From assembly GCF_000737315.1 (NCBI RefSeq), contig NZ_JMCB01000023.1, forward strand, positions 124,001-188,000: a stretch of 64,000 nt of DNA. Direction: 5' to 3'. The notes below the pieces were generated by a model, which was not told the origin of the DNA, did not search any database, and was given only the letters and a program-made list of their open reading frames with translations. Positions 5,390 to 20,895 of this stretch are shown in pieces. Position 1 is the stretch's first letter. Each line of letters begins with the position of its first letter. The stretch comes from Hyalangium minutum (GTDB taxonomy: Bacteria > Myxococcota > Myxococcia > Myxococcales > Myxococcaceae). The position numbers were made by a program, and so were the translations under genes.

Positions 5390-6256
5390 ATGTCACGGTC
5401 CATTGAGCACGCGTCGTTCCCGCAGCACGGTCACGCCCATTCATGGCGCGGGCTCCTCCTGGGGCTCGCGCTTTGCTTGTTGCCAGTGAGCGCTCGAGCC
5501 GCCCCGCTGGGGGATGCCCAGACCTATCTGCTCTCTGCCAAGCGCCTCTACGAGGGCCTCGATTACGAGGCCGCACTCACCCAAATTCAGCTTGCGAGAC
5601 AGGTGCCCCGCAACCGGGACCAGGAACTTACCCTGCTCCTCTACGAAGGCATCCTGCTATCGGAGTTGAACCGATGGGACGAGGGTGCCGCCTCGTTCAA
5701 AACCGCTTTGGAGTTGGATACTGCGGCGAAACTGCCAGTGCAAGTGCCGCCCAAGGTCAGTGCTCGCTTCGAGTCCCTGCGCGAAAAAAAGAAGAGGGAA
5801 CTCGCTGCCCAGGTGACACCAGCCCCGGCTCTTCCCTCCCCTACAGAGAACCCCAGCCCGCCAACAGAAGCGGCTTCACCTGCGTCTCTGCCACCTTCCA
5901 TCGTGACAGTCACTGACAGCCCTTCACCCGAGAAGGAACTGCACAGCTATTCGCTGATCCCAGCGATTGCCGGAGGCAGCCTGGTAGTGGCAGGTGGGGT
6001 CTCCTGGGCTCTCTCTCGTGGCGAACTCAACCGTTTGCGTACGGCTTCCCCCAGCCTCACGAGCGAGGAAGATGTGCGACACAGCGTCTCGCGCGGACGT
6101 ACCTTGCAGACGCTTGGGATGGGCCTGCTGGGAGCGGGAACAGCGGGCCTGCTGACAGCAGCGGGCATGTACATGCTCGGAGGGCCTTCTCGGCCCACAA
6201 CAATTGGCGTGGGGACGACTGGGCAAGCCGTCATCCTTTATGGAGACTGGCCATGA
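5390..6256 (+). CDS. Secreted TPR-like protein with Pro/Ser linker and C-terminal hydrophobic anchor
   Basis: Signal peptide; LYEGLDYEAAL...LLYEGILL...LPVQVPPKV; homologous to 62132 and 63008 ORFs; ATGA overlap with next gene. Confidence 0.8.
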   Translation: MSRSIEHASFPQHGHAHSWRGLLLGLALCLLPVSARAAPLGDAQTYLLSAKRLYEGLDYEAALTQIQLARQVPRNRDQELTLLLYEGILLSELNRWDEGAASFKTALELDTAAKLPVQVPPKVSARFESLREKKKRELAAQVTPAPALPSPTENPSPPTEAASPASLPPSIVTVTDSPSPEKELHSYSLIPAIAGGSLVVAGGVSWALSRGELNRLRTASPSLTSEEDVRHSVSRGRTLQTLGMGLLGAGTAGLLTAAGMYMLGGPSRPTTIGVGTTGQAVILYGDWP

Positions 6257-9003
6257 GCCGGGGCGCCATAAGCAGAAGCCTGCCTCATACAGCATTCGCC
6301 GTCATCCTGGCAGCCCTCAGTGGCTGCGCCGACTTCGAGCAGGCGGGTGAATCTTTTTGCCAACAGAACCTCTCGCGCTGTGGCCGAGCCACGGAGCCCG
6401 AGCCCTCTTCCAATGAAACCATTCCCGACGCTGGGGAGCCCAGTTCCAGCGATTCAGGCCCAGGCACTCCAAACGCGGGGGGATCTGATGCGGGAGTCAT
6501 GGATTCAGGGGTTCCAGACGTGGCAGCTCCTGACTCGGGCACTCCGGACGCGGGCAGGCCCGATGCAGGAACTTCTCAAGACGCAGGGCTCCCGGACGCA
6601 GGTCCACCGCCCAATACACCTCCCACCATTACCGTAAGCTCCCAGTCCGCCTCTCAGGTGGCTGCGCACGGAACTGTCACCTTCTCAGTGGTGGCTCAAG
6701 ATAATGAGAGCAGTTCACTCCAGTTCTCCTGGAGCGCCAGTACAGGAGCTTTCGGAAGCCCTCAGAGTACTAGCAACTCCAGTATCGTCACTTGGTCCGC
6801 CGGGGGTTGTGCAGCCGGTGGCACTGTGACCATCACCGTCAAAGTCTCCGACGCACAAGCTGACTTCTCGACCAAAGCTTTCAGCGTCTCAATGGCTCGC
6901 TGTCTACCCACGTCCATTGCAAGTGGGAGTAGACACTCTATTGCCTTGCTTGCGGATGGCACTGTTTGGGCCTGGGGAGACAATACCGCTGGTCAGCTTG
7001 GCGACGGTACCTCTACCCTGCGCTACATCCCTTCCCAGGTCTCGGGACTCTCCGGCATCACCGCCCTGGCTGCTGGAGGCTACCACTCTCTGGCCTTGCG
7101 CAACGACGGCACTGTCTGGGCCTGGGGCGAAAACTCCTATGGCCAACTGGGTGATGGGACCACCACCGATCGTCTTACCCCCGTCCAAGTACCGGGACTC
7201 TCGGGCATCACCACCCTGGCCGCTGGCATCTACCACTCTCTGGCCCTGCGCAACGACGGCACTGTTTGGGCCTGGGGCTATAACAGCGTTGGCCAACTCG
7301 GCGATGGAACCACTACCAATCGCCTCACCCCCGTCCAAGTACCGGGGCTCTCGGGCACTACGACTCTGAACGCTGGAGGCGCCCACTCTCTGGCCTTGCG
7401 CAACGACGGCACTGTCTGGGCTTGGGGCTACAACGGCTATGGCCAGCTAGGAGCTGGGACCACCACCGATCGTCTCACTCCCCTCCAGATTCCAGGACTT
7501 TTAGGCATCACGGCCCTGGCCACTGGAATCTCCCACTCCCTGGCCCTGAGTAACAACGGCACTGTCTGGGCCTGGGGTTTCAACCTCTACGGCCAGTTGG
7601 GCGATGGGACGACCACCAATCGCCTTACCCCCGTCCAGGTACCAGGGCTCTCGGGAACTACGACTCTAAACGCTGGAGGCTCCCACTCTCTGGCCTTACG
7701 CAACGACGGCACTGTCTGGGCTTGGGGCTACAACAACTATGGCCAAGTGGGCGATGGGAGCACCATCAATCGCCGCACCCCAGTCCAGGTCTCCGGCCTC
7801 ACGGGCATTACGGTCATGGCCGCTGCAGAATCCCACACTCTGGCTTTGCGCAACGACGGCACTGTCTGGGCTTGGGGCCACAACGGCTATGGCAAGCTGG
7901 GCGATGGAACTAGCGCGGAGCGCCTCACCGCTGTCCGAGTCTTAGGCATTTCGGGCATCACAGCCCTAGCAGCTAGAGGCTACCACACTCTGGCCTTGCG
8001 CAACGACGGCACTGTCTGGGCTTGGGGCTACAACAACTATGGCCAAGTGGGCGATGGGACCACCACCAATCGCCCCACCCCTTTCCAGCTCTCCGGCCTC
8101 TCGGGCATCACGGCCCTGGCCGCTGGAGAATCCCACTCTCTGGCTCTGCGCAATGACGGCACTGTTTGGGCCTGGGGCTATAACGTCGCTGGCCAACTCG
8201 GCGATGGGACGACCACCAATCGCCTTACCCCCTTCCAGGTCCCTGGCCTCTCAGGCATTACGGCCCTGGCCGCAGGAGACTTTCACTCTCTGGCGTTGCG
8301 CAACGACGGCACTGTCTGGGCCTGGGGCTCCAACGGCGCTGGCCAACTCGGCGATGGGACGACCACCAATCGCCTCACCCCCTTCCAGGTTCCAGGACTT
8401 TTAGGCATCACGACCCTGTCTGCTGGAATCTCCCACTCTCTAGCCCTGCGCAGCGACGGCACCGTCTGGGCCTGGGGTTCCAACCTCTACGGCCAACTGG
8501 GCGATGGGACCACCACCAATCGCCCCACCCCCTTCCAGGTCTTAGGACTCTTGGGCATCAACGCCCTGGCCGCTGGAGGCTACCACTCTCTGGCCTCGCG
8601 CAACGACGGCACTACTTGGGTCTGGGGCTACAATTACTATCGTCAACTGGGCGATGGGACGACCACCGATCGCCCCACCCCTTTCCAGCTCTCCAGCCTC
8701 TCAGGCATCACGACCCTGTCGGCTAACATCTTCCACTCTCTGGCCCTTCGCAACGATGGCACTATTCGGTCGTGGGGCAGCAACAGCCTGGGCCGACTCG
8801 GCGACGGGACTCTTATTCATCGAGCTACCCCCGTCCAGGTCTCCGGCCTCTCAAACATTACGGCCCTAGCCGCTGGAGTCGCCCACTCTCTGGCCCTTCG
8901 CAACAACGGCACCGTCTGGGCCTGGGGTTCAAACTTCTACGACCAGATTGGCGACGGAACTCCTGCAATCTTCCCGGTACCTATACAGACCCAGCTTCCG
9001 TAA
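6253..9003 (+). CDS. RCC1-repeat lipoprotein (14 blades, probably two 7-bladed propellers) with PDAG linker and Ig/PKD-like domain
   Basis: Lipobox LSGC; PDAG/DSG repeats; 14 copies of HSLAL.NDGTVWAWG.N..GQLGDG. Confidence 0.92.
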   Translation: MSRGAISRSLPHTAFAVILAALSGCADFEQAGESFCQQNLSRCGRATEPEPSSNETIPDAGEPSSSDSGPGTPNAGGSDAGVMDSGVPDVAAPDSGTPDAGRPDAGTSQDAGLPDAGPPPNTPPTITVSSQSASQVAAHGTVTFSVVAQDNESSSLQFSWSASTGAFGSPQSTSNSSIVTWSAGGCAAGGTVTITVKVSDAQADFSTKAFSVSMARCLPTSIASGSRHSIALLADGTVWAWGDNTAGQLGDGTSTLRYIPSQVSGLSGITALAAGGYHSLALRNDGTVWAWGENSYGQLGDGTTTDRLTPVQVPGLSGITTLAAGIYHSLALRNDGTVWAWGYNSVGQLGDGTTTNRLTPVQVPGLSGTTTLNAGGAHSLALRNDGTVWAWGYNGYGQLGAGTTTDRLTPLQIPGLLGITALATGISHSLALSNNGTVWAWGFNLYGQLGDGTTTNRLTPVQVPGLSGTTTLNAGGSHSLALRNDGTVWAWGYNNYGQVGDGSTINRRTPVQVSGLTGITVMAAAESHTLALRNDGTVWAWGHNGYGKLGDGTSAERLTAVRVLGISGITALAARGYHTLALRNDGTVWAWGYNNYGQVGDGTTTNRPTPFQLSGLSGITALAAGESHSLALRNDGTVWAWGYNVAGQLGDGTTTNRLTPFQVPGLSGITALAAGDFHSLALRNDGTVWAWGSNGAGQLGDGTTTNRLTPFQVPGLLGITTLSAGISHSLALRSDGTVWAWGSNLYGQLGDGTTTNRPTPFQVLGLLGINALAAGGYHSLASRNDGTTWVWGYNYYRQLGDGTTTDRPTPFQLSSLSGITTLSANIFHSLALRNDGTIRSWGSNSLGRLGDGTLIHRATPVQVSGLSNITALAAGVAHSLALRNNGTVWAWGSNFYDQIGDGTPAIFPVPIQTQLP
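6911..8995 (+). repeat. 14 x 150-bp coding tandem repeat (RCC1 blades)
   Basis: ACTGTCTGGGCCTGGGG-type core recurs at exactly 150-bp steps from 6961 to 8911. Confidence 0.95.
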
Positions 9004-9095: not shown

Positions 9096-10235
9096 TCAGA
9101 GCCCGTACAGCTTGGAGATGATCTCCTTCATGATCTCCGAAGTACCACCGCCGATGGTGATGAGGCGCACGTCACGCCACGCCCGCGCCACCGGCGTCTC
9201 CTCGATGTAGCCCATGCCTCCGAAGAACTGCTGGCAGTCGTAGGCCACCTTCTGCGCCAGATCCCCAGCGAATAGCTTCGCCATGGAGATCTCCTTCACC
9301 GGGTTCTCCTTCGCGTCGTATAGCGCCACCGCGTGGTACGTCAGCCGCTTCGCCGCCTCGATCGCCGTCAGGTGCTCCACGAACTTGTGCCGCCACACCT
9401 GGAACTTGATCAGCGGCTTCCCAAACGCCTCGCGCTCGTTGCCGTACCGGATCGAGTCCTCCACCATTCGCTCCATCCCCGACACCGCCGTGATCGCTCC
9501 CACCAGGCGCTCGCCCTGGAAGTTCGTCATGATGTGGTAGAAGCCCTCGTTCTCCTCCCCAATCACATACCGGCGAGGAATCCGGCAGTCCTCGAAGTAC
9601 AGGATCGCCGTGTCCGAAGACAGGTTGCCCACCTTGTCCAGCTTCTTCGACACCGAGAAGCCCTTCACATCCGTCGGGAACGTCACCAGGGAAATACCGC
9701 CGTACCCCGCCTCGCCCGTGCGCACTCCCAGCGTGATGAAGTCCGCCCGCGTCCCGTTCGTGATCCACATCTTCGAGCCGTTGATGACGTAGTCATCCCC
9801 GTCCCGCCGCGCCGTCGTCTTGATGTTCGCCACGTCCGAGCCCGCGCCCGGCTCGCTCACACCCAGCGCCGCGATCCGCTCGCCCTTCAGCGCCGGCTCG
9901 AGGAACTCTCGCTTCTGCTCGTCCGTCCCCAGCTCGTTGATGATCGGCGTCGCCATCTGGCTCTGCACCAGCAGCGCCATGTTCACGCCCGCGTTCTGGC
10001 TCCGCGTCAGCTCCTCCGAGAACGCCGTCACGAACCAGTAGTCCAGCCCGCTCCCGCCGTACTTCGGATCGTGGTTGATCCCCAGGAACCCCAGCTCCCC
10101 CGCCTGCTTGAAGATCTCCCGCGGGAAGATGCCCGCTCGATCCCACTCCAGCGAGTGCGGCGTCAGCTCCTTCTCGACCCAGGCTCGCACCGTCTTGCGA
10201 AAGGCCTCATGCTCCTCGGTGAACGGGTTGATCAT
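9096..10235 (-). CDS. Acyl-CoA dehydrogenase
   Basis: [51 protein letters not shown]. Confidence 0.95.
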
Positions 10236-10316
10236 TCGCGGGCTCCTCCAAAGGATTGATTTTCCAGTCAATAGCAGGCGTCCCGCGCGTGAACAAGCAT
10301 CCTTCCCCGCCCTTCC

Positions 10317-11402
10317 ATGCCCACCAGCGCTCCCCTCCTCCTGCTTCTCGGGCTGACGGCCGCCGCCCCGCCCGCGCCCCCCTCCACCGCCGAGCAGCTG
10401 CGCACCGTCTGCCGCACCCAGGGAGGAGATCCTCGCAACCCTTGGGCCCTGGCCCACGGCATCGTCCTGGAGGGGCGAAACTTCCGAGCCCGTGACGGCC
10501 GGCTGGCAGCGGAGGTCATCGTCTCGGACTTCCTGCGCCGCGATGGCTCCCCGGGAGGCCGGGGGCTGTACTTCGAGCCCTTCGCCGCCGACGGCACACC
10601 CGTGGAGCCCCACCCCGCCCTGCAGGTGAAGACGCTGCTGCTGGCGGGCTTCTCCGCGAGCCGGAAGTTCCAGGCCTCGGGCGGCTCCGTGACGCTGGGG
10701 GCGCTCGTGGAGGAGCTGAAGCGGGACTTCCGTCCGGAGCTGGCCTCCTCACCCGAGGGCGCCTGGACGCTCGACGCTCTGGCGCAGGTGCTCCCCCCCG
10801 GAGCGGCCTTCCGCACCGGCTCCGGGGAGACGGTCCGCATCGACGCGATGATGGACGAGGCACTCGCCACGCTGGAGCGCGCGCACGAGGACCTGGCCGC
10901 CGGCATGAGGGCCGGGCTGCCTCAAGTCCCCAAGCAGAAGCAGGGCATCTACACACACCCGTGCGGAGGCTTGCACTTCTTCCAAGCCGTCACGAGCTGG
11001 GCCCGTCACCCCGCTGTCCGCAAAGCGTGGGGAGCACGGCTGGACACGCAGGTGGACGTGCTCGTGTACCGGCTCGGCTCGGAGGCCCGCCAGTACGAGG
11101 CCGCGCTCTCGGAAGCCCCGAGCACGTACCGGCTCCCTCTGCTCTCCCAGTCCCTCAAGTTCTATGGCCACTTCCTGGAGACGCTCGGCCGCTACCGGCG
11201 CGAGACCGGCTGGAGCCCCACGCCTCCTCAGCGGCAGGCGGTGACGCGGGCGCATCAGCTCCTCGAAGCCACGGTCCGCAGGCTCGGCGAGGCCGGTGCC
11301 TGGCGCGAGCTGGAGACGCTCCAAAAGGAGCAGCCCCAGCTCTACCTGGACCTCGTGGGCGACGCATGCCACGCGGCACACGGGCTCGCCGAGTGGAAGT
11401 GA
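10317..11402 (+). CDS. Hypothetical secreted protein
   Basis: Signal peptide; 361 aa with GC3-biased codons; motifs [32 protein letters not shown]. Confidence 0.8.
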
Positions 11403-11440: not shown

Positions 11441-13189
11441 TCAGGACGAAGGAGGCGATTGGCCTCCCGGCTCCCCTCGGGACCGTCCAGCCCTGAACCG
11501 ATGCAGCATTTCGAGCCAACGGCTCCCACGCCGGCGGACCTCGAACAGCGAGCCATAGAAGAGCCGCTCCGCACGCAGGCGCAGCAGATCCGCGCGCAGT
11601 TCCAGAGGCGAGGCGACGCGGATCCGTCCCTGCTCGAAGGCCTCGGTCATGGCGCGGCGCTGGAGCTTGCCGCTGCTCGTCTTCAGGATCTGCCCGTAGC
11701 GGATGAACAGCACGTCCTGCAGCGCCACCGTGACGCCCACAGCCTCCAGGATCGCCGAGCACACCTGCTGCTGGCTCTGAGCCCGCCGCTCCAGCACCGA
11801 GGGAGAGTGGACCTCGGCCAGCACCACCATCCTTCCCTGCGTTTGGATCACCACCGACCGGCCAGGGCGGATGAACGGCAGCCGCTCGATGGCCTGCTCG
11901 AAGTCACTGGAGAAGTAGCTCTGCCCGTTGATCTTGATCCGATCGTTGACGCGGCCGGTGATGAACAGCTCCCCGCCGTCCACGAAGCCCAGATCGCCCG
12001 TGGCGTAGAAGCCCTCCTCGCCCCGCAGCGGGCGCTCGTCGGCGTAGTACGCGTCCGCGAGGCTTCCCCCTCGCAGCTCGATCTCGCCCAGCTCGCGCTC
12101 GCCGCACACGCGCCCGTCCTCGGTGCGCAGCCGCAGCTGGAACTCGCTCAGCGGCGGCCCGAGCGAGATGGCTGACTGGCCATTGGGAGCCGTGACGACC
12201 CGGCCGCCCTCGGGGCCCGCGCAGGAGACCATCAGCACGGCCTCGGCCATGCCGTAGCAGGGCTTGATCGCGCTGCGCCGCAGCCCCCGAGGCCCCATCA
12301 ACGCCATGAAGCGCTCCAGGTTGGGGATGTTGATGGGCTCGCTGCCCAGGTAGATGGCCCGCAGCGAGCTCAGCTCCAGGCGCGCCAGCTCCTCCTCGTC
12401 CAGCTCGGCCAGGTACTTCAGCGAGTAGTCGATCGCGAAGTTGGGGATGACGGCCAGCGTGCCGCGGTTCCGCGACATGAACTCCAGCCAGCCCATCGGG
12501 TCCAAAAGAAATGACGAGGGCTGCGAGATGTGGATGTCACAGCCGCCGTACACGCAAGCCAGCAGCCCGCCCACCAGCCCCATGTCGTGGTACAGCGGCA
12601 GCCAGCTGCACCCGCGATCGGCCGAGCTGAAGCCCATGTGGCCGGTGATCATCCGCAGGTTGGCGGTCAGGTTCCCCCAGGTAATGGGCACGCCCTTCGG
12701 GAACGCCGTGGAGCCCGAGGAGAACTGCACGAAGGCCAGCTCTTGCGGAGCAGGCTCTCGCAGCCGCCCTCCCTCCGCCCGGACTCCCGTCGGAGGAAGC
12801 GCCACACGCCGCAGCGGCAGCTCCAGCCCCTTCAAGCTCGGTGAATCCAACAGCAGGGACACGCCATGGCGCTCGGAGATCCGCGAGAGAAAGTCCCGGT
12901 AGGCCTGCTTCGGAGTGCTGAGGATGTAGGGCTTCACCGAGAGCGGCAGCGCCCCCAGCTCCAGCAACCCCAGGAAGGAGAGGACCACCGCCTCCGAGGT
13001 CTCGAACGGAAAGAGGATCTTGTCCCCGGGCTTCACGCCCTGCTGCCGAAAGTGCTCCGCGCAGCCCACGATCCGGGCGGGCAGCTCTCCATACGTGAGG
13101 GCCACAGGAGGATCCGCGAAGTCCTCAGAGAGGTACACGCCCCGCGAGGCCTCGGCCGTGGAGATGCGCGTGAAGAGGCTGTCGGACAT
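11441..13189 (-). CDS. Fatty acyl-AMP ligase (FAAL)
   Basis: FVQFSSGSTAFPKGV, SWLPLYHDMGL, CYGMAEA, ATGDLGF, KTSSGKLQR; in operon with an ACP. Confidence 0.9.
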   Translation of the reverse strand: MSDSLFTRISTAEASRGVYLSEDFADPPVALTYGELPARIVGCAEHFRQQGVKPGDKILFPFETSEAVVLSFLGLLELGALPLSVKPYILSTPKQAYRDFLSRISERHGVSLLLDSPSLKGLELPLRRVALPPTGVRAEGGRLREPAPQELAFVQFSSGSTAFPKGVPITWGNLTANLRMITGHMGFSSADRGCSWLPLYHDMGLVGGLLACVYGGCDIHISQPSSFLLDPMGWLEFMSRNRGTLAVIPNFAIDYSLKYLAELDEEELARLELSSLRAIYLGSEPINIPNLERFMALMGPRGLRRSAIKPCYGMAEAVLMVSCAGPEGGRVVTAPNGQSAISLGPPLSEFQLRLRTEDGRVCGERELGEIELRGGSLADAYYADERPLRGEEGFYATGDLGFVDGGELFITGRVNDRIKINGQSYFSSDFEQAIERLPFIRPGRSVVIQTQGRMVVLAEVHSPSVLERRAQSQQQVCSAILEAVGVTVALQDVLFIRYGQILKTSSGKLQRRAMTEAFEQGRIRVASPLELRADLLRLRAERLFYGSLFEVRRRGSRWLEMLHRFRAGRSRGEPGGQSPPSS

Positions 13190-13204
13190 GGTGCCAGCTC
13201 CTCC

Positions 13205-13633
13205 TCAGGACTTCGGAAGGCGCGCCGCCTCCAGGAACTCCTGCACGGAGCACAGGGAGCGATCCGCCGCGCGCACGAACCCGGCCTGGACATGCGCCTC
13301 CACCGCCACCTGGCGCGCGGTCCCCACCAGGATCTTCTGGTGGAAGCGCACGCGGTAGTTCACCGCCTCCGCGTCGCCCAGCTCCTCCGGCGTGGGCTCC
13401 TCCAGGTGCGTCCAGATCACCACGTCCGGCGGTGAGATCTCCTTGAGGTAGTCCACCTCGACGCGCAGCGTGAGCCCAATGACCGCAGCGCCCTGGCGCA
13501 TGCCATTCTGCTCCAGCCACGCCCAGCGTCCGGTCTCCAAGTACTCGAGCACCGTCGCGTTGTTCACGTGCCCCAGGCTGTCCAGATCGTTGGGGCGCAC
13601 GCGCAGCGTCAGGGAGGAGTCTTCAAGGCGCAC
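13205..13633 (-). CDS. Hotdog-fold acyl-thioesterase (4HBT family)
   Basis: VRPNDLDSLGHVNNATVLEYLETGRW. Confidence 0.9.
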   Translation of the reverse strand: MRLEDSSLTLRVRPNDLDSLGHVNNATVLEYLETGRWAWLEQNGMRQGAAVIGLTLRVEVDYLKEISPPDVVIWTHLEEPTPEELGDAEAVNYRVRFHQKILVGTARQVAVEAHVQAGFVRAADRSLCSVQEFLEAARLPKS

Positions 13634-13636
13634 GGT

Positions 13637-13999
13637 TCAGCTCGTGGAGACGATGACAACGGTGGAGACGAAGCCACCGCTGTGGGAGATGGAGAGCAGC
13701 GCCTGCCAGCCGCGCTGTTCCAGGTGCTCGTGCAGCGGGCCGTGGAAGCGAAAACGGGGCGCGTGACGCTCGTCGTGGACGACCTCGGCGTCCGTCCAGT
13801 GCCAGCCCTCGATGGCCGGCAGCGCCTTGAACAGGGCCTCCTTGCAGGAGAAGCCCGCCGCGAGGCTCTCGATCGGAGCCACGCTCTGACGGAAGCGCTC
13901 CGTCTCCTGCTCCGTGAAGAACACGCCCGGCGTCCACAGGTGCTCCACGTCCTTCAACTCGTAGAGCGCCTGCAGATCGTGCCCCAGGCCCATCAGCAC
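13637..13999 (-). CDS. acpS: AcpS-type 4'-phosphopantetheinyl transferase
   Basis: GLGHDL, FT..E, FSCKEALFKAL, LSISHSGG; start overlaps upstream stop. Confidence 0.85.
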   Translation of the reverse strand: MLMGLGHDLQALYELKDVEHLWTPGVFFTEQETERFRQSVAPIESLAAGFSCKEALFKALPAIEGWHWTDAEVVHDERHAPRFRFHGPLHEHLEQRGWQALLSISHSGGFVSTVVIVSTS

Positions 14000-14994
14000 C
14001 CGACCAGCTCCATCCACTGATCCTCAACCTGCTCGGCGGAAGCACAGGAGATGCCGGTGATGCGCTTGAGGGAGTGGAGGATGAGCGAGCGCTTGCGCTC
14101 GATCATCTCGGGGGCCACCGCGGCCTCGCCCGCCACGGCGTCCAGGTGATCCCACCAGTTGGTGTGCGTGGTGCGCGTCTCCACGTGCGCGCGCGCGCTG
14201 CCGTAGAGCTCGCCCCCGTCCCGCAGGAAGAAGTGGGCCACCGCGAAGCACTCCTTCATCGCGTACGCCCCGCTGTCCACCAGCGCCTTGGCGAACGAGG
14301 TGAAGTACTGCATGTGCTGCACCTCGTCCGCCCCCACGTGCTTGAGCAGCAGCTTGAGCCCCGGATCCTTCGCCCGCCGCCCATATTGGCCGTAGTTCAC
14401 CGCCGCGATGCCCTCGGAGAACGACAGCATCGTCACCGTGCGCAGCAGATCATCGTCCGGGAACACCTTGCGCTGGTCGATGACCGTCGCGTCATCGAAC
14501 GGCGCGAAGCCCAGCATCCGCGCCAGCTGGCTGAACCCCATCTCGTGGTGGCTCTCCTCCTCGTTCCAGTAGCGCGTCCACGTGCCCAGCGACTGGATGA
14601 TGGAGGCCACCACCGGATCCTTCTCCAGGAAGCGCCGGCACTCACTGTCCGCCAAGCGGCTCATGCGATCCGCGCTCGGCTTGGCCGTCATCTCCGCCCG
14701 CCCCGCGCTCCACACCACGAACCGATCCTGCTCGGTGAGCTGATCCAGCTGCACCGCCGACAGCAGTTCCACCGCGCTCCAGCGCCGTGATTCGTGGAGC
14801 CGGTGCTGCTCCCAGGTGATGTCCATCAGCGTCCGGCCCTCTTCCTTGAAGGCCCGGTACAGATCCCGGATCACCCCGGGACGAGACGGCCCGAGCGGCT
14901 CCGAGCTGTCCGCCTCGAGCGGGGGCACTTCGTACAGCCGCGGCTCGGGCCGGGCGACAGCGGGCATCGAGGTACGGCTCACGACGGAACTCAT
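13993..14994 (-). CDS. Ferritin-like diiron enzyme, soluble acyl-ACP desaturase family
   Basis: WTRYWNEEESHHE and HVGADEVQHM parallel the two EXXH boxes of acyl-ACP desaturases (WTRAWTAEENRHG, IAADEKRHE); TGATG coupling to ACP. Confidence 0.75.
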   Translation of the reverse strand: MSSVVSRTSMPAVARPEPRLYEVPPLEADSSEPLGPSRPGVIRDLYRAFKEEGRTLMDITWEQHRLHESRRWSAVELLSAVQLDQLTEQDRFVVWSAGRAEMTAKPSADRMSRLADSECRRFLEKDPVVASIIQSLGTWTRYWNEEESHHEMGFSQLARMLGFAPFDDATVIDQRKVFPDDDLLRTVTMLSFSEGIAAVNYGQYGRRAKDPGLKLLLKHVGADEVQHMQYFTSFAKALVDSGAYAMKECFAVAHFFLRDGGELYGSARAHVETRTTHTNWWDHLDAVAGEAAVAPEMIERKRSLILHSLKRITGISCASAEQVEDQWMELVGC

Positions 14995-15284
14995 CAGGCG
15001 ACCCTCCCCTGCTGGCACTCCTGTACGAACAACTCGACGACCCGCGAGATCGGCGTCTCCAGCGACAGCGCGGGAAGCCGGACCCGAACTCCGTACTGCT
15101 TCCGCAGCGCATTGGAGGCCTTCGCGAACGCCTCCATCAGATCCACGCTGTTGTGCATTTTCTCAGAGCGTGAGATCACTTCCGCCAGGGACAGGTCCTG
15201 TCCGAATAATTCGTCAGGCGATAGAGCCACGTTCTCGCAGAACTTCCGGCAAATGAAGTCCTTCAGATCAGCGACCTCTGCCAT
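14994..15284 (-). CDS. Acyl carrier protein (divergent)
   Basis: 96 aa, helical; NSVDLME resembles the DSLD phosphopantetheine site; first gene of operon with PPTase and FAAL. Confidence 0.75.
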   Translation of the reverse strand: MAEVADLKDFICRKFCENVALSPDELFGQDLSLAEVISRSEKMHNSVDLMEAFAKASNALRKQYGVRVRLPALSLETPISRVVELFVQECQQGRVA

Positions 15285-15336
15285 GGGGGGTCCTCCGCCG
15301 ATGTTCACGACTTCTATGTAGTTTCCGCTAGTTTAA

Positions 15337-15355
15337 GAGGATTGCCAAGATCCTC
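15337..15355. promoter_or_regulatory. Inverted repeat GAGGAT-N7-ATCCTC upstream of the ACP operon
   Basis: Seen in AT-rich intergenic region about 50 bp upstream of the ACP start. Confidence 0.35.
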
Positions 15356-15426
15356 CCCACCTCCTGGGTTCGAACAAAGGGACCCGCCTCTCAGAGTTAT
15401 GAGCTGAACGGGCCCCTCCGAGAGAC

Positions 15427-16599
15427 CTACAACCCCAGCTTCGCCAGCGCATCAGAGGCGAAACCCGCCTCGGAGAGAATCTCCCGGGAGTGCTGCCCAA
15501 GCGTTGGCGGAGGCCTCAAAGGCGTCTCTCCCATGCGCAGGGGTGTGAGCAGGTGCGTCACCTTGAGGCCTCGCTGGGGGTCCTCCACCTCGGCGAAGAG
15601 GCCCCGGGCGCGGTGCTGCGCGTCGGCCAGCACCTCGTCGCCCTCCAGCACGGGCTCGATGCACAAGTCCGTGCCCGCGAAGAGCTGCTGCCAGTGAGCC
15701 AGCGGGTGCTCCGCGAACAGGCGCGCCAGCTCCGCCTTCACCCGCTCGGCGCCCCCGTTCACGTCGTACCCGGACTCGAAGAGGTCCATGCGCCCCAGGC
15801 GCTCGCACAGGCCGGAGAAGAACTTGGGCTCCAGCGCGCCCACCGCCAGCCACCGGTCGTCCTTCGTGCGGTAGAGGCCGTAGCACGCATAGCCGCCGTT
15901 GAGCGCCTCGCGCCCGCGCTGGAGCGGCTGCCCCTGCTCGCCCATGAAGAGCCGCGCGGCCAGGTGCATGTGGAGGAAAGCCATGGAGCCCTCCGTCATG
16001 GACACGTCCACGAAGCGGCCGCGCCCGGTGCGCTCGCGCTCGTGCAGCGCCGCGAGGATGCCCACCAGCGCGAAGAGGCTCCCTCCGCCAATGTCGCCGA
16101 TCTGCACGCCCGGGAAGGCCGGCGCCCCGCCCGCCACTCCGCCGTAGCCGAGCGCCCCCGCACGGGCCACGTAGTTGATGTCATGCCCCGCCTTGAGCCG
16201 GTCCGGCCCCGTCTGCCCGTAGCCGGAGATGGCGCAGTAAATGAGGCGCGGGTTCTCCGCGCGCAGGGCCGCCTCCCCCACCCCGAGCTTGTCCATCACC
16301 CCGGGCCGGAAGCTCTCCACCAGCACGTCGTAGCCGCGCACCAGGCGCTTGAGCGCGTCACGGCCCTCGGGGGACTTGAGGTTGAGCGTGAGGGAGCGCT
16401 TGTTGCGGTTGAGCCCGTAGAAGAGCGCGCTCTCGTCGTCGCGCAGGGGCGGCATCTGGCGGATGTAGTCGCCTCCGTCGGGCTCCTCCACCTTGTCCAC
16501 GGTGGCGCCCAGGTCCGCGAGGACGAGCGTGGCGTAGGGGCCCGGCAGCAGGCGGGACAGATCCAGCACCTTGAGGCCGGTGAGCGGCAGCGAGTTCAT
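15427..16599 (-). CDS. CaiB/BaiF family III CoA-transferase / alpha-methylacyl-CoA racemase
   Basis: LKVLDLSRLLPGPYAT, LNRNKRSL, ESFRPGVMDKLG, GHDINY, GDIGGG. Confidence 0.93.
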   Translation of the reverse strand: MNSLPLTGLKVLDLSRLLPGPYATLVLADLGATVDKVEEPDGGDYIRQMPPLRDDESALFYGLNRNKRSLTLNLKSPEGRDALKRLVRGYDVLVESFRPGVMDKLGVGEAALRAENPRLIYCAISGYGQTGPDRLKAGHDINYVARAGALGYGGVAGGAPAFPGVQIGDIGGGSLFALVGILAALHERERTGRGRFVDVSMTEGSMAFLHMHLAARLFMGEQGQPLQRGREALNGGYACYGLYRTKDDRWLAVGALEPKFFSGLCERLGRMDLFESGYDVNGGAERVKAELARLFAEHPLAHWQQLFAGTDLCIEPVLEGDEVLADAQHRARGLFAEVEDPQRGLKVTHLLTPLRMGETPLRPPPTLGQHSREILSEAGFASDALAKLGL

Positions 16600-16700: not shown

Positions 16701-17027
16701 CTAGCCGAGCAGCTTGGCCAGCTTCATCGCCAAGCCCATGTCCATCGGCTTGAACTTGAGCTTGCCGGACATGGCCGCCATCTGGGCGTTCATCTTCTTC
16801 TCACGGATGGCCACGAAGTCGCCGTTGCTCACCGAGATGGTCATCTTCGGCGTGCCGTTGTGGCCCGAGGACACCCAGTCGGAGGGCTTCGTCAGATCCA
16901 GCGTCCAGTTGCCGCCGCCATCACCCGAGATGTTGAAGTGGATGATCGAATTGATGTCCTTGGCCAGCTCCGGCTTCGCCTGGAGCGCAGCCGGAATCTC
17001 CGTCTCGATGATGTCCTTCGACGTCAT
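16701..17027 (-). CDS. SCP2 sterol/lipid-binding domain protein
   Basis: IHFNISGDGGGNWTLDL, NAQMAAMSGKLKFK..MGLAMKL. Confidence 0.9.
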   Translation of the reverse strand: MTSKDIIETEIPAALQAKPELAKDINSIIHFNISGDGGGNWTLDLTKPSDWVSSGHNGTPKMTISVSNGDFVAIREKKMNAQMAAMSGKLKFKPMDMGLAMKLAKLLG

Positions 17028-17106
17028 GGGTTCCTCCTGGTTGACTTCAGAATCAACGACGGCGGGACCGTAGTGTCGCCCCCACGGGAGGTCAAGCCCC
17101 AGAGGA

Positions 17107-17559
17107 CTACTTCGGCGGCGGAGTCTCTGCCGAAGGCCCCTTGAGGGCGCGGCGCACCATCTCGAGCAGATCGTTGAGCTCGAAGGGCTTGGCCAGGTGG
17201 CCCACGGCGCCAATGTCCTGCGCCTTGGGGCCTACGTTGCGATCGGCGCTCAGGACGATGATGGGGATCTTCGAGAACTCAGGGCGCTGGCGCATGCGCT
17301 GGGCGAACTCCCAGCCGTCCATCACCGGCATCATCAGGTCCAGGAGGATGAGCCGCGGGGGATCCGGCTCCAGCCGGTCCAGCGCCTCCTTGCCGTTGCG
17401 CGCACGGCGGATCTCAAAGCCCTCGGCCTCCAGGATCTCCGAAAGGGCCTCCAGAATGTCCGGGTCGTCGTCCACGACCAGGATGACAGCCGAACCGGTG
17501 TGAGGTGTGTTGTGCGCGGCCAGAAAGTCGTCTCCCGTCGAGGCGCCAGGATTCTCCAT
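17107..17559 (-). CDS. Single-domain response regulator
   Basis: ILVVDDD, LILLDLMMPVMDG, LSA, LAKPF. Confidence 0.92.
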   Translation of the reverse strand: MENPGASTGDDFLAAHNTPHTGSAVILVVDDDPDILEALSEILEAEGFEIRRARNGKEALDRLEPDPPRLILLDLMMPVMDGWEFAQRMRQRPEFSKIPIIVLSADRNVGPKAQDIGAVGHLAKPFELNDLLEMVRRALKGPSAETPPPK

Positions 17560-18889: not shown

Positions 18890-20746
18890 TCAGTCGCCGC
18901 CCTTGCCCTCGTACAGCTTGTCGAGCGTGGCCGCGTACTTCTGGCTGCAGAACTTCCGCTTCACCTTCAGCGTCGGCGTCAGCTCGCCGCTCTCCTGGGT
19001 GAAGTCCGCGGGCATGATCTCGAACTTCTTGAGGCTGCTGTAGGGCGGCTGCTCCTCGTTCACCTTGGCGATGATCTCCTGGACGGCGGCGCGGATCTCC
19101 GGGCGCTTGCCCAGCTCCGCGTATGAGCCCACCTGGACGCCCTTGTCGGACAGGAGCTTCTTGGCCGCGTCCTCCGTCACCGTAATCAGCACCACCAGGT
19201 ACGGCCGCTTGTCGCCGTAGACCATGGCCTGGCTGATGAGCGGGAACGTCTTGAGGGTGTTCTCGATGTTCTGCGGCGCCACGTTCTTGCCGCCCGCGGT
19301 GACGATGATGTCCTTCTTGCGGTCGGTGATGCGCAGGCAGCCATCCGCGTCCAGCTCGCCGATGTCGCCCGTGTGGAACCAGCCGTCCTGCTCCAGCACC
19401 TCGGCGGTGGCGGTGGGGTTCTTGTAGTAGCCCTTCATCACGCAGGGGCCGCGCACCAGGATCTCCCCGTCCGAGGCGATCTTGATCTCGGTGCCGGGCA
19501 GCGCCGGACCCACTGTGCCGATCTTGATCTTCTCCGGCCGGTTGCAGTTGCAGGGCGCCGAGGTCTCCGTCAGGCCGTAGCCCTCCAGCACCTTGAAGCC
19601 GAGCAGATCGAAGAAGTAGGCGATCTTCTTGGACAGCGGCGCGCCGCCCGAGACGAACAGGCGCATGTTGCCGCCCAGCTTCTCGTCCAGCGTGGCGCGC
19701 ACCTTCTTGAACACCAGCGCCTGCGCCAGGGTGAAGCCGAGCGAGCTGTACTCGCGGCCCTGCATCTTCGCCTCGACGTACTCGTCGAAGAGCTTGAAGG
19801 CCCAGCGGAACAGCTTGCCCTTGAGGCCCGGGGCCGCCGAGCCGTTGGACACCACGTTGTTGTAGACCTTCTCGAAGACGCGCGGCACCGCCGGCAGCAC
19901 CGAGGGCTTGGCCTCGGCGAGGTTGGGCAGCAGCTTGTCCACGGACTCGGCGAACTGGAGCTTGAAGCCCATGCCCAGCCACGCTGCCTTCACCACCTGC
20001 GCGAACGAGTGCGCCAGCGGCAGGAACAGCATCACCCCATCCTTCGGATCCATCAGGCCGACGGAGCGGCACGACTCCGCCTGGTACGCCCAGTTGCCGT
20101 GCGTGAGGATCACGCCCTTGGGATCGCCCGTGGTGCCCGAGGTGTAGATGAAGCCCCAGGTGTCATCCGGCTTCACCGCGTGGGCCCGGTCCGCGAACGC
20201 ATTCGGCGGGGCCTGCCGGCCCTTGGCCAGCAGGTCCGCCAGCGACATCTCCTTGTCGCCGGAGACGGGGCCTTCGAAGACCACCAGCTGCTTCACGCTG
20301 GGACAGTCCGCCAGCCGCTGCCGCACGCGGGTAAGGCGGCCAGCCTGCTTGGCGTCCTTCTCGTCGTTGTCGACGAAGAGCAGCGAGGCCTCGGAGTGGT
20401 TGAGGATGTAGCGGACCTCATCCGGCGTATTCGAGTTGTAGATGGGCACCGTGATGGCGTGCGCGGCGGAGATCGCCATGTCGCACACCACCCAGTTCAG
20501 CGTGGTGTTGGCGAAGATGGCCACGCGATCGCCCGGCTGGATGCCCTGAGCCACCAGCGCGTTGGAGAGCGTCTTCACCTGCTCGAGCACCTGGCTCCAC
20601 GAGACGTCCACCCACTTGCCCTCCTGCTTGTACGTAACAGCAGCCTTCGAGGGGCCCTGCTCAGCCTGGTGCATCAACAGCTCGATCAGGTTCTTGGTCC
20701 CCGCCGCGGCGGGGGCAGGCACTGGCATCTGACTCTCCGCTCTCAT
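18890..20746 (-). CDS. fadD: Long-chain fatty-acid--CoA ligase
   Basis: IYTSGTTGDPKGV, FLPLAHSF, EGYGLTET, FHTGDIG, ITDRKKD. Confidence 0.92.
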   Translation of the reverse strand: MRAESQMPVPAPAAAGTKNLIELLMHQAEQGPSKAAVTYKQEGKWVDVSWSQVLEQVKTLSNALVAQGIQPGDRVAIFANTTLNWVVCDMAISAAHAITVPIYNSNTPDEVRYILNHSEASLLFVDNDEKDAKQAGRLTRVRQRLADCPSVKQLVVFEGPVSGDKEMSLADLLAKGRQAPPNAFADRAHAVKPDDTWGFIYTSGTTGDPKGVILTHGNWAYQAESCRSVGLMDPKDGVMLFLPLAHSFAQVVKAAWLGMGFKLQFAESVDKLLPNLAEAKPSVLPAVPRVFEKVYNNVVSNGSAAPGLKGKLFRWAFKLFDEYVEAKMQGREYSSLGFTLAQALVFKKVRATLDEKLGGNMRLFVSGGAPLSKKIAYFFDLLGFKVLEGYGLTETSAPCNCNRPEKIKIGTVGPALPGTEIKIASDGEILVRGPCVMKGYYKNPTATAEVLEQDGWFHTGDIGELDADGCLRITDRKKDIIVTAGGKNVAPQNIENTLKTFPLISQAMVYGDKRPYLVVLITVTEDAAKKLLSDKGVQVGSYAELGKRPEIRAAVQEIIAKVNEEQPPYSSLKKFEIMPADFTQESGELTPTLKVKRKFCSQKYAATLDKLYEGKGGD

Positions 20747-20895
20747 TCCAGATCCTCCGAGATCTTCGCTTGGGCCCACGACTGCCTCCGCCGGCCCCCT
20801 GGCGGGCAAAGGGCGAGCAAAATCAGGCGCATGGGGCGGCGGTGTTAACACGCGCACTCGCCGGGCAGCAACCCGACCTGACATGTAGGGCCGCT

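Follow-up and report, generated by a model that had tools for sequence, protein, structure and literature searches.

In the 64,000-nucleotide stretch of Hyalangium minutum DNA analysed here (the window), five co-oriented genes at positions 11441-15284 form a compact cassette, which recurs in many bacteria as a widespread, mobile module. [quoted passage not shown] Computation showed which genes are present, how they are ordered and conserved, to what family or fold each product belongs, and which six residues are the ligands of the diiron site. With slightly better than even confidence, we read these genes as a self-contained thiotemplated acid-tailoring cassette, in which a carrier would be primed and loaded with an acid, and the acid oxidised and released. 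Such a cassette would follow the known logic of thiotemplated fatty-acid tailoring, carried out by an uncharacterised diiron family and by a carrier family that is invisible to current models.

Organization, conservation and spread of the cassette

The genes are transcribed in the order carrier, diiron protein, PPTase, thioesterase and ligase, and occupy about 3.8 kb in all:

14994..15284, minus strand: small carrier protein, a putative non-canonical acyl carrier protein (ACP) of 96 amino acids (aa), assigned by predicted fold, motif and gene context
13993..14994, minus strand: ferritin-like diiron-carboxylate protein of 333 aa (ATG start), distantly related to soluble acyl-ACP desaturases
13637..13993, minus strand: AcpS-type PPTase, 118 aa (ATG 13993) or 126 aa (GTG 14017), assigned by Pfam ACPS
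13205..13633, minus strand: hotdog-fold thioesterase of the 4HBT / YbgC-FadM class, 142 aa, assigned by Pfam 4HBT_2
11441..13189, minus strand: adenylate-forming ligase of the FAAL clade, 582 aa, assigned by Pfam AMP-binding and matches in the Protein Data Bank (PDB)
15285..15426, minus strand: upstream intergenic region, 142 bp, the presumed promoter region, with a GGAGGA ribosome-binding site at 15296-15291

The GC content at third codon positions of the five frames (0.84-0.92) fits a genome of ~68% GC, which argues that all five are real genes. The original prediction, made from the letters of the window, had described co-oriented genes that overlap or are separated by 3-15 bp, and the junctions read exactly so. 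The carrier stop and the diiron start share the sequence TGATG, with a 1-nt overlap at 14994, and the same TGATG joins the diiron stop to the PPTase start at 13993; the alternative PPTase start at GTG 14017 would give a 25-nt overlap. A 3-nt spacer separates the PPTase stop from the GTG of the thioesterase, and a 15-nt spacer containing GGAGGAG lies between the thioesterase stop and the ligase ATG. The ribosome-binding site of the carrier gene is 6 nt 5' of its ATG at 15284. In the upstream region neither a sigma-70 consensus nor a terminator was found, and Rfam gave no match and no riboswitch signal; for a myxobacterium all these negatives are uninformative. Genes for polyketide synthases (PKS), nonribosomal peptide synthetases (NRPS) or ketosynthases (KS) are absent within ~10 kb, as had also been claimed, and a larger PKS/NRPS cluster around the cassette was rejected for this reason.

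The distribution of the cassette was determined by scanning one genome per species, from 185,579 species, with two family-specific peptide patterns. The scan gave 90 confirmed loci; 80 of them, each from a different species, were taken for comparison, and their gene content was determined by tblastn with the window proteins. The carrier and the thioesterase were each found in 78 of the 80 loci, the ligase in 77 and the PPTase, in the same operon, in 62. The order carrier - diiron - PPTase - thioesterase - ligase is kept on one strand in nearly all of them, the ligase having moved to the front in a few. Since both the gene set and its order are conserved across the loci of 80 species, the association is beyond chance. 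An alpha/beta-hydrolase gene (Hydrolase_4, ~300 aa) is inserted between the thioesterase and ligase genes in 36 loci and is missing from the window.

The cassette occurs in at least six phyla. The hosts include Myxococcota (Hyalangium, Corallococcus, Citreicoccus, Nannocystaceae, Sorangium and metagenome-assembled genomes (MAGs) of Polyangiaceae), Actinomycetota (Streptomyces, Kitasatospora, Frankia, Catellatospora, Saccharothrix, Solwaraspora), Cyanobacteriota (Nostoc, Desmonostoc, Oscillatoria, Symploca and others), Beta- and Gammaproteobacteria (Oxalobacteraceae, Noviherbaspirillum, Gallionellaceae, Thiohalocapsa), one Pyrinomonadaceae of the Acidobacteriota and one MAG of the Eremiobacterota. 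When the flanking open reading frames (ORFs) were clustered, nothing beyond the cassette genes and the optional alpha/beta-hydrolase was common to different phyla. Two copies are on plasmids:

L083, 8424-12613: Nostoc sp. ATCC 53789 conjugative plasmid pNsp_b, beside integrase, transposase and XisH/XisI genes
L082, 8742-13749: Xenorhabdus sp. TH1 252-kb plasmid, 3' of IS110 and Tn3 transposase genes

In both plasmid records the carrier gene is annotated as 'hypothetical protein', and in that of Xenorhabdus no PPTase gene is annotated and the PPTase appears missing. The restriction of what phyla share to the cassette genes, together with plasmid copies standing alone amid mobile-element genes, strongly supports a stand-alone functional module, in keeping with the self-contained operon first proposed. 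Full-text literature searches returned no published description of the cassette, and recent FAAL surveys do not mention it. The belief that no myxobacterial example had been described is therefore upheld as far as publications go, but the cassette is a module of many phyla rather than a local oddity.

The component proteins

The diiron protein represents an isolated family. A homologue search with it returned 277 proteins, labelled ferritin-like domain-containing, hypothetical or occasionally acyl-ACP desaturase, and the family forms about four full-length clusters among 1.84 billion 50%-identity representatives. The next relatives beyond the family match at E ~1e-10 or weaker and approach or just pass the threshold of FA_desaturase_2. 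Identity to the window protein is 53-82% in seventeen diverse members, in which the blocks WNEEExHHE, SE, ADExQH and THxNWWD are invariant, as are all six predicted metal ligands (E101, E147, H150, E194, E224 and H227). The ligands follow the pattern E ... ExxH ... E ... ExxH of soluble desaturases. In hhalign to the nearest FA_desaturase_2-like outgroup (99.6% probability) they align with E / EExxH / E / DExxH, and they also align in M. tuberculosis DesA2, which the family profile matches at E = 9e-5. From this pattern, the protein is predicted to be a canonical 2-His/4-carboxylate diiron enzyme on an isolated and strongly constrained branch near the soluble desaturases.

The original prediction spoke of soluble acyl-ACP-desaturase boxes. 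The six ligands bear this out in outline, and the protein is of neither the membrane nor the CylC type, but the relationship is remote. Pfam FA_desaturase_2 (PF03405) scores 17.4 bits (E = 0.0021) with the window protein, below the cut-off of 22.7, and some family members carry a weak match; identity to the solved desaturases is 14-19%. The AlphaFold2 (AF2) model, with a mean local confidence (pLDDT) of 78.5, is a soluble all-helical ferritin-like bundle. Its top 14 Foldseek matches are stearoyl-/palmitoyl-ACP desaturases, at TM-scores of only 0.44-0.50 and E ~1e-3. The castor stearoyl-ACP desaturase heads the list (TM ~0.49), followed closely by R2lox, the R2 subunit of ribonucleotide reductase (RNR-R2) and aldehyde-deformylating oxygenase (ADO). 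Because the kinship to desaturases is so remote, the reaction cannot be read from the family. The family has invariant residues outside the desaturase model, namely H67/E68, H149, E151 and the C-terminal THxNWWD motif; this motif and a conserved N-terminal segment, ITWEQQRLHESRRWS, are additions relative to soluble desaturases. Three residues past ligand E194 there is an invariant Ala, at what we take to be the place of Thr199 in the castor desaturase.

Two other enzyme types were considered and rejected. The soluble ferritin-like fold, and the lack of a match to membrane FA_desaturase (PF00487), led to rejection of a membrane desaturase or JamB-type alkyne-forming enzyme. A dimetal halogenase of the CylC/NocO type, making a chlorinated or brominated fatty acid, has in its favour that the triad of FAAL, ACP and ferritin-like protein resembles CylA/B/C and NocL/M/O in outline (PMC12101540, PMC8406957). 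However, the CylC motifs QExxH and HxxDExxH (PMC12101540) are absent from the family: the corresponding stretches are EEESHHE and (K)HVGADEVQH in the window protein, with WNEEEAHHE and KQVGADEIQH as the consensus of the family. Gln does not precede the first ExxH, and a conserved His is lacking three residues ahead of DExxH, since the upstream His of the window protein is not kept in the family. The ligands are those of a 2-His/4-carboxylate site and not 3-His/3-Glu, and Pfam AurF does not match the protein. We regard a halogenase as highly improbable.

The best pointer to the substrate class of the diiron protein, although an indirect one, is the gene context of its relatives outside the family. 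Three of the nearest outgroup ferritin-like proteins, to which NCBIfam gave no family name, were placed on contigs. Two of them have a canonical PP-binding ACP gene on one side and a FAAL gene on the other (L085 4668-8566 and L086 3010-8438), near genes for membrane desaturases, KASIII, KS, an amidase and an Asp/Arg-hydroxylase; the third adjoins PKS/NRPS genes. The ACP - diiron - FAAL clusters of the outgroup look uncharacterised too. From their gene order, the action of a ferritin-like enzyme on a FAAL-loaded acyl-ACP seems ancestral in the wider group. The triad of ACP, soluble desaturase-like protein and FAAL is thus found in these outgroup clusters and also in the Burkholderia afc cluster (PMC12186527).

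By sequence, the carrier is not recognisable as an ordinary ACP. It has no Pfam, NCBIfam or PDB sequence match, even when the family profile is run against PDB. For 16 members of its family no Pfam match, PP-binding (PF00550) included, was seen at E <= 10, and hhalign comparisons of the family with E. coli AcpP, and with a canonical ACP encoded in a related locus, gave probabilities of ~1% or less. None of the 96 homologues found is named or has a Pfam domain. Every attempt to prove ACP identity by sequence, whether by Pfam, PDB profile or hhalign, failed. AF2 nevertheless predicts with confidence (pLDDT 85) a small bundle of helices, with the invariant Ser46 at the start of the long helix 46-64. 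Its best Foldseek matches are DltC (D-alanyl carrier protein), an anammox ACP, AntF and AcpM, at TM 0.55-0.66 and E-values of 0.8-3, which are weak, as is to be expected with ~90 residues. Ser46 stands in the motif NS(V/I/L)D(L/F)(M/I)E in all 78 locus-derived homologues and is the proposed phosphopantetheine site, for which the AcpS gene in the operons of 62 of the 80 loci gives indirect support. The carrier gene is always directly 5' of the diiron gene in related loci. The predicted fold, the motif and this context, and not sequence membership, support acceptance of the small protein as a putative carrier. The ACP of the original prediction is retained on these grounds, while a PP-binding match is lacking even for the family profile.

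The carrier also differs from E. coli AcpP in charge. Over the segment from the Ser to position +25, the median net charge of the carrier is +2, compared with -10 in AcpP; for the whole proteins the values are about -3 in the family and -15 in AcpP. The recognition helix is charge-inverted, basic where that of AcpP is acidic. Such a helix together with a private PPTase suggests insulation from the ACP-dependent enzymes of the host.

The ligase matches Pfam AMP-binding and a DIP2-like C-terminal domain, and its best PDB matches are all FAALs (7r7f at E = 7e-58, 3pbk, 3kxw and FadD32/23/28). Among NCBIfam models, those for FAAL and MbtM give E-values of 1e-53 to 1e-79, yet stay below their full-length cut-offs. 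Immediately behind the YGMAE motif, alignment with 7r7f leaves a 15-residue gap in the ligase and one more gap of 3 residues. In 58 members of the ligase family, 26-28 aa separate YGMAE from the VG(R/P)P that follows it, compared with ~42 in 7r7f and ~48 in a second, ordinary FAAL of the Streptomyces locus L035. From FAAL28 numbering, we take the site of the gap to be that of the FAAL-specific insertion. This insertion in the N-terminal domain is a defining feature of FAALs (PMC8460268). The ligase therefore is called a FAAL only with reservation: membership of the clade, as first proposed, holds, but the insertion seems to be missing. A basic C-terminal extension of ~50 aa (window 11441-11600), probably helical and with the consensus TPMELRADLLRMRAQRLFYGSL.EARKRGSRWL, is kept in myxobacterial ligases and is absent from those of the actinobacterial, cyanobacterial and proteobacterial cassettes.

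The seeming absence of the insertion bears on the nature of the acid. The substrate might be other than an ordinary fatty acid (a short, functionalised, amino or aryl acid), and the diiron enzyme might carry out N-oxygenation, epoxidation, C-C cleavage or decarboxylation. Also consistent with this possibility are the isolation of the diiron family from all characterised families, its invariant H67/E68, H149, E151 and THxNWWD outside the desaturase model, and the many reaction types among ferritin-like enzymes (PMC12101540). However, the best sequence matches of the ligase are without exception fatty acyl-AMP ligases, the nearest structural relatives of the diiron protein use long acyl-ACPs, and the outgroup relatives pair with FAALs and membrane fatty-acid desaturases. 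We consider a substrate of this kind distinctly unlikely.

The remaining two proteins score above their Pfam cut-offs, in agreement with the original prediction, which gave the operon its own PPTase and release thioesterase. Pfam ACPS (PF01648) matches the PPTase with 29.6 bits (cut-off 25), its length of 118-126 aa is AcpS-like, NCBIfam holo-ACP synthase models match at E = 4e-16, and in PDB it is matched best by AcpS structures from Streptomyces coelicolor. Pfam 4HBT_2 (PF13279) matches the thioesterase with 54.1 bits (cut-off 25.5). Its N-terminal stretch NDLDSLGHVNN (D-x-D-x-x-GHVNN) aligns with 4HBT-class thioesterases in PDB, and the Asp of this stretch is probably catalytic. In outline, the five functions originally assigned stand, although the desaturase boxes, the ACP and the FAAL had been named too specifically.

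A proposed load, oxidise and release pathway

The pathway itself is inferred: its substrate, each of its reactions, the kind of oxidation and what becomes of the product. The private AcpS-type transferase would convert the 96-aa carrier to the holo form at Ser46, and the FAAL-clade ligase would adenylate a free aliphatic (fatty) acid and pass the acyl group to the carrier. The diiron protein would then oxidise the carrier-bound chain with O2 and reducing equivalents from the host, most likely by desaturation or hydroxylation. Hydrolysis of the modified acyl-carrier thioester by the hotdog thioesterase would yield a free modified acid, which could be a signal or antibiotic lipid. In many other genomes the added alpha/beta-hydrolase, absent from the window, might free the substrate from lipids or off-load the product. 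The odd basic carrier and its private PPTase may insulate the module from the host fatty-acid synthase and let it work after horizontal transfer.

Several lines of evidence support this pathway. Loading, desaturation and release have been demonstrated experimentally for bacterial polyynes (PMC9828172). The carrier and diiron genes are always adjacent, are translationally coupled and have been duplicated together in Hyalangium. The gene order has been kept in 80 genomes of at least six phyla, which share none of the flanking genes, and the plasmid copies of Nostoc and Xenorhabdus are flanked by transposase or integrase genes. The predicted diiron site is canonical, the closest structures are stearoyl-ACP desaturases, and the outgroups lie between ACP and FAAL genes. 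Finally, the predicted ACP-like fold of the carrier has its invariant Ser at the start of a long helix.

Other evidence weighs on the opposite side. Sequence homology between the carrier and ACPs was undetectable by Pfam, PDB profile and hhalign, and the PPTase is missing in 18 of the 80 loci. Thioesterases of the YbgC/4HBT class usually take acyl-CoA (coenzyme A) substrates. The ligase, apparently lacking the stretch that marks FAALs, could form acyl-CoA or activate an acid other than a fatty acid. Ferredoxin and reductase genes are not among the genes of the cassette. By TM-score the diiron protein is equally distant from desaturases, R2lox, RNR-R2 and ADO, which is compatible with more than one type of reaction.

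The closest functional analogue is the bacterial polyyne core. In the cay and pgn clusters this core (the FAAL CayA/PgnD, an ACP, three membrane desaturases and a thioesterase) is necessary and sufficient, and the chemistry takes place on the ACP (PMC9828172). As proposed for the cassette, a FAAL that stands alone charges an ACP of its own with a fatty acid, the chain is tailored oxidatively on this ACP and a thioesterase frees the modified fatty acid, all from a compact set of genes without PKS or NRPS. On this point the original prediction needs correcting, as the scheme of loading, oxidation and release had already been shown for polyynes. The polyyne core differs in its triad of membrane FA_desaturases (JamB-like) with rubredoxin or ferritin helpers, in place of which the cassette has one soluble ferritin-like diiron protein, along with a carrier outside PP-binding, a private AcpS and a hotdog thioesterase.

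Other systems share parts of the cassette. The soluble acyl-ACP desaturases (castor delta-9, DesA2) have the ferritin-like fold and the six-ligand site, and a carrier-bound acyl substrate is expected in both cases, but they use the housekeeping ACP, whereas the diiron protein of the cassette pairs with a private carrier. CylA/B/C and NocL/M/O combine a FAAL that stands alone with a dedicated ACP and with a ferritin-like dimetal enzyme whose substrate is acyl-ACP (PMC12101540, PMC8406957). Soluble CylC and NocO were obtained by expressing them together with their partner ACPs, and the cassette likewise pairs enzyme and carrier tightly. These triads, however, have the 3-His/3-Glu site with the halogenase motifs that the cassette protein lacks, and they feed PKS assembly lines, whereas the cassette has its own thioesterase and PPTase. 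In JamA/B/C and TtuA/B/C a FAAL-type ligase charges a dedicated ACP with a short or medium fatty acid for O2-dependent desaturation (PMC11837247). JamB and TtuB, however, are membrane di-iron histidine-box desaturases with a fold unrelated to that of the cassette protein, and the thioesterase and PPTase of the five-gene cassette are both missing from these systems.

The combination of FAAL, carrier and soluble ferritin-like protein is also present in two larger clusters, which were compared with the cassette by their published descriptions. The Burkholderia afc cluster (AFC-BC11) encodes the FAAL AfcA, the carrier AfcK and two putative acyl-ACP desaturases, of which AfcN is essential and AfcD dispensable (PMC12186527). 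In the lipothrenin (lit) cluster, LitD is a FAAL, LitE an R2-like protein and LitF an ACP, and deletion of LitE has a minor effect (PMC10616846). Both are large clusters with many further enzymes, unlike the five-gene stand-alone module. A match to an already characterised cluster, which was looked for in the literature, was not obtained: none of the systems compared is the five-gene module.

A bolder form of the proposal treats the cassette as an orthogonal, portable acyl-carrier system, with a charge-inverted carrier family and its PPTase, new diiron oxidases whose reactions go beyond simple delta-x desaturation, and a discrete oxidised signal or antibiotic lipid as product. Many of the hosts are large-genome bacteria, several of them differentiating (myxobacteria, Streptomyces, Frankia, Nostoc). 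We think this form possible but rather unlikely.

If the load, oxidise and release pathway is correct, the cassette would be a very compact route of oxidative lipid tailoring, with five genes in ~3.8 kb, and its diiron protein would add to the ferritin-like diiron enzymes a new branch whose substrates are carrier-bound. The carrier would belong to a family missed by domain models, so that genome mining based on PP-binding may overlook such loci, and with its PPTase it would constitute a naturally insulated pair of use in pathway engineering. The spread over phyla and plasmids suggests that the cassette can function in unrelated hosts, and its presence would flag a lipid made by several well-studied producers of natural products. 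The interest is moderate to high, since the cassette is widespread, mobile and experimentally tractable.

The window copy and the gene neighbourhoods

In a neighbour-joining tree, the diiron protein of the window lies on a long branch together with those of L001, L063 and L005 and with the first copies of L002-L004 (Hyalangium versicolor, a Hyalangium sp. MAG and an uncultured deltaproteobacterial MAG), where the carrier and diiron genes have been duplicated as a pair:

L002, 7678-10405: tandem carrier-diiron duplication before a single PPTase, thioesterase, hydrolase and ligase
L003, 7696-10414: the same arrangement
L004, 7672-10488: the same arrangement

The second diiron copies of these three loci cluster with the ordinary myxobacterial type. 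By this tree the window carries the divergent diiron paralogue and lacks both the ancestral pair and the hydrolase, and an altered regio- or chemoselectivity of the window copy is plausible. Three separate cassettes are present in a single Hyalangium MAG (L001, L017 and L026). The CoA-transferase, hypothetical protein and acyl-CoA dehydrogenase flanking the window cassette are 88-97% identical to their counterparts in L001 of this MAG.

The following genes of the window surround the cassette:

9096-10250, minus strand: acyl-CoA dehydrogenase, flanking the cassette
15427-16599, minus strand: family III CoA-transferase, the upstream flank
16701-17213, minus strand: SCP2 lipid-transfer protein
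18890-20884, minus strand: acyl-CoA ligase-like protein, 664 aa
21921-23849, minus strand: FAD-linked oxidase, 642 aa, FAD_binding_4 and FAD-oxidase_C
10317-11402, plus strand: hypothetical protein, 361 aa, signal-peptide-like N-terminus, no Pfam/NCBIfam match
6253-9003, plus strand: RCC1-repeat protein, 916 aa, 13-14 repeats, WD40_RLD 833 bits

Further neighbours are a response regulator, a histidine kinase and a sigma factor. The 642-aa oxidase presumably resembles the alkyl-dihydroxyacetone phosphate synthase of ether-lipid synthesis. Judged by these families, the cassette of the window sits in what appears to be a lipid-metabolism neighbourhood. The CoA-transferase and the dehydrogenase also flank the cassette in Myxococcaceae loci. 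ORF clusters that resemble the acyl-CoA ligase, SCP2, the response regulator, the histidine kinase and the sigma factor are found again in 17-19 myxobacterial loci. The upstream CoA-transferase and the downstream genes were rejected as general parts of the system because they are syntenic in Myxococcaceae only.

Two further explanations were considered. In one, the modified acyl group is not released but goes to a host acceptor, for instance a membrane lipid, a lipoprotein or a lipopeptide; the thioesterase would serve only for editing or proof-reading, and the optional alpha/beta-hydrolase would be an acyltransferase. The Myxococcaceae cassette lies in a conserved lipid neighbourhood (CoA-transferase, SCP2, acyl-CoA ligase, acyl-CoA dehydrogenase), the actinobacterial one lies beside a P450, a transporter of the major facilitator superfamily (MFS), a second FAAL and acyl-CoA dehydrogenases, and 36 of the 80 loci have the alpha/beta-hydrolase, all of which would suit such a transfer. 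However, clustering of the flanking ORFs revealed no acceptor-specific gene common to phyla, the plasmid copies are alone between mobile-element genes, and the thioesterase, with 78 of 80 loci, is as conserved as the core genes. We judge transfer to an acceptor unlikely. In the other explanation the cassette serves housekeeping or adaptive membrane homeostasis, recycling saturated into unsaturated fatty acids, for example in adaptation to cold or micro-oxic conditions. This would agree with the conserved chromosomal site among Myxococcaceae lipid-metabolism genes, with the ecological diversity of the hosts (Gallionellaceae and Thiohalocapsa included) and with a diiron gene tree that largely tracks phyla. 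On the other hand, phospholipid synthesis has no need of a private carrier, a PPTase and a releasing thioesterase. The distribution is also patchy, at ~90 matches to the two peptide patterns in 185,579 species genomes; some cassettes are on plasmids, and one MAG has the three copies L001, L017 and L026. A homeostatic role is, in our view, quite improbable. The load, oxidise and release pathway remains the reading we prefer.

The two plus-strand genes of the window may be noted separately. The gene for the 361-aa hypothetical protein is convergent with the ligase gene; in 19 myxobacterial loci a counterpart with 62-88% identity adjoins the cassette. The RCC1-repeat gene lies just past the acyl-CoA dehydrogenase gene that flanks the cassette, and its product consists almost wholly of RCC1 repeats.

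In actinobacteria, a cytochrome P450 and an MFS transporter precede the cassette (L035 1-7935, Streptomyces sp. NBS 14/10). In the same locus a divergent set follows, comprising the second, ordinary FAAL, an 88-aa GG-ending protein (ThiS/MoaD-like), a 278-aa protein and an acyl-CoA dehydrogenase. The arrangement loosely recalls parts of the lit cluster. Similar neighbourhood patterns are present in 15-18 other actinobacterial loci, and in 13 loci an enoyl-CoA hydratase-like gene lies 3' of the ligase gene.

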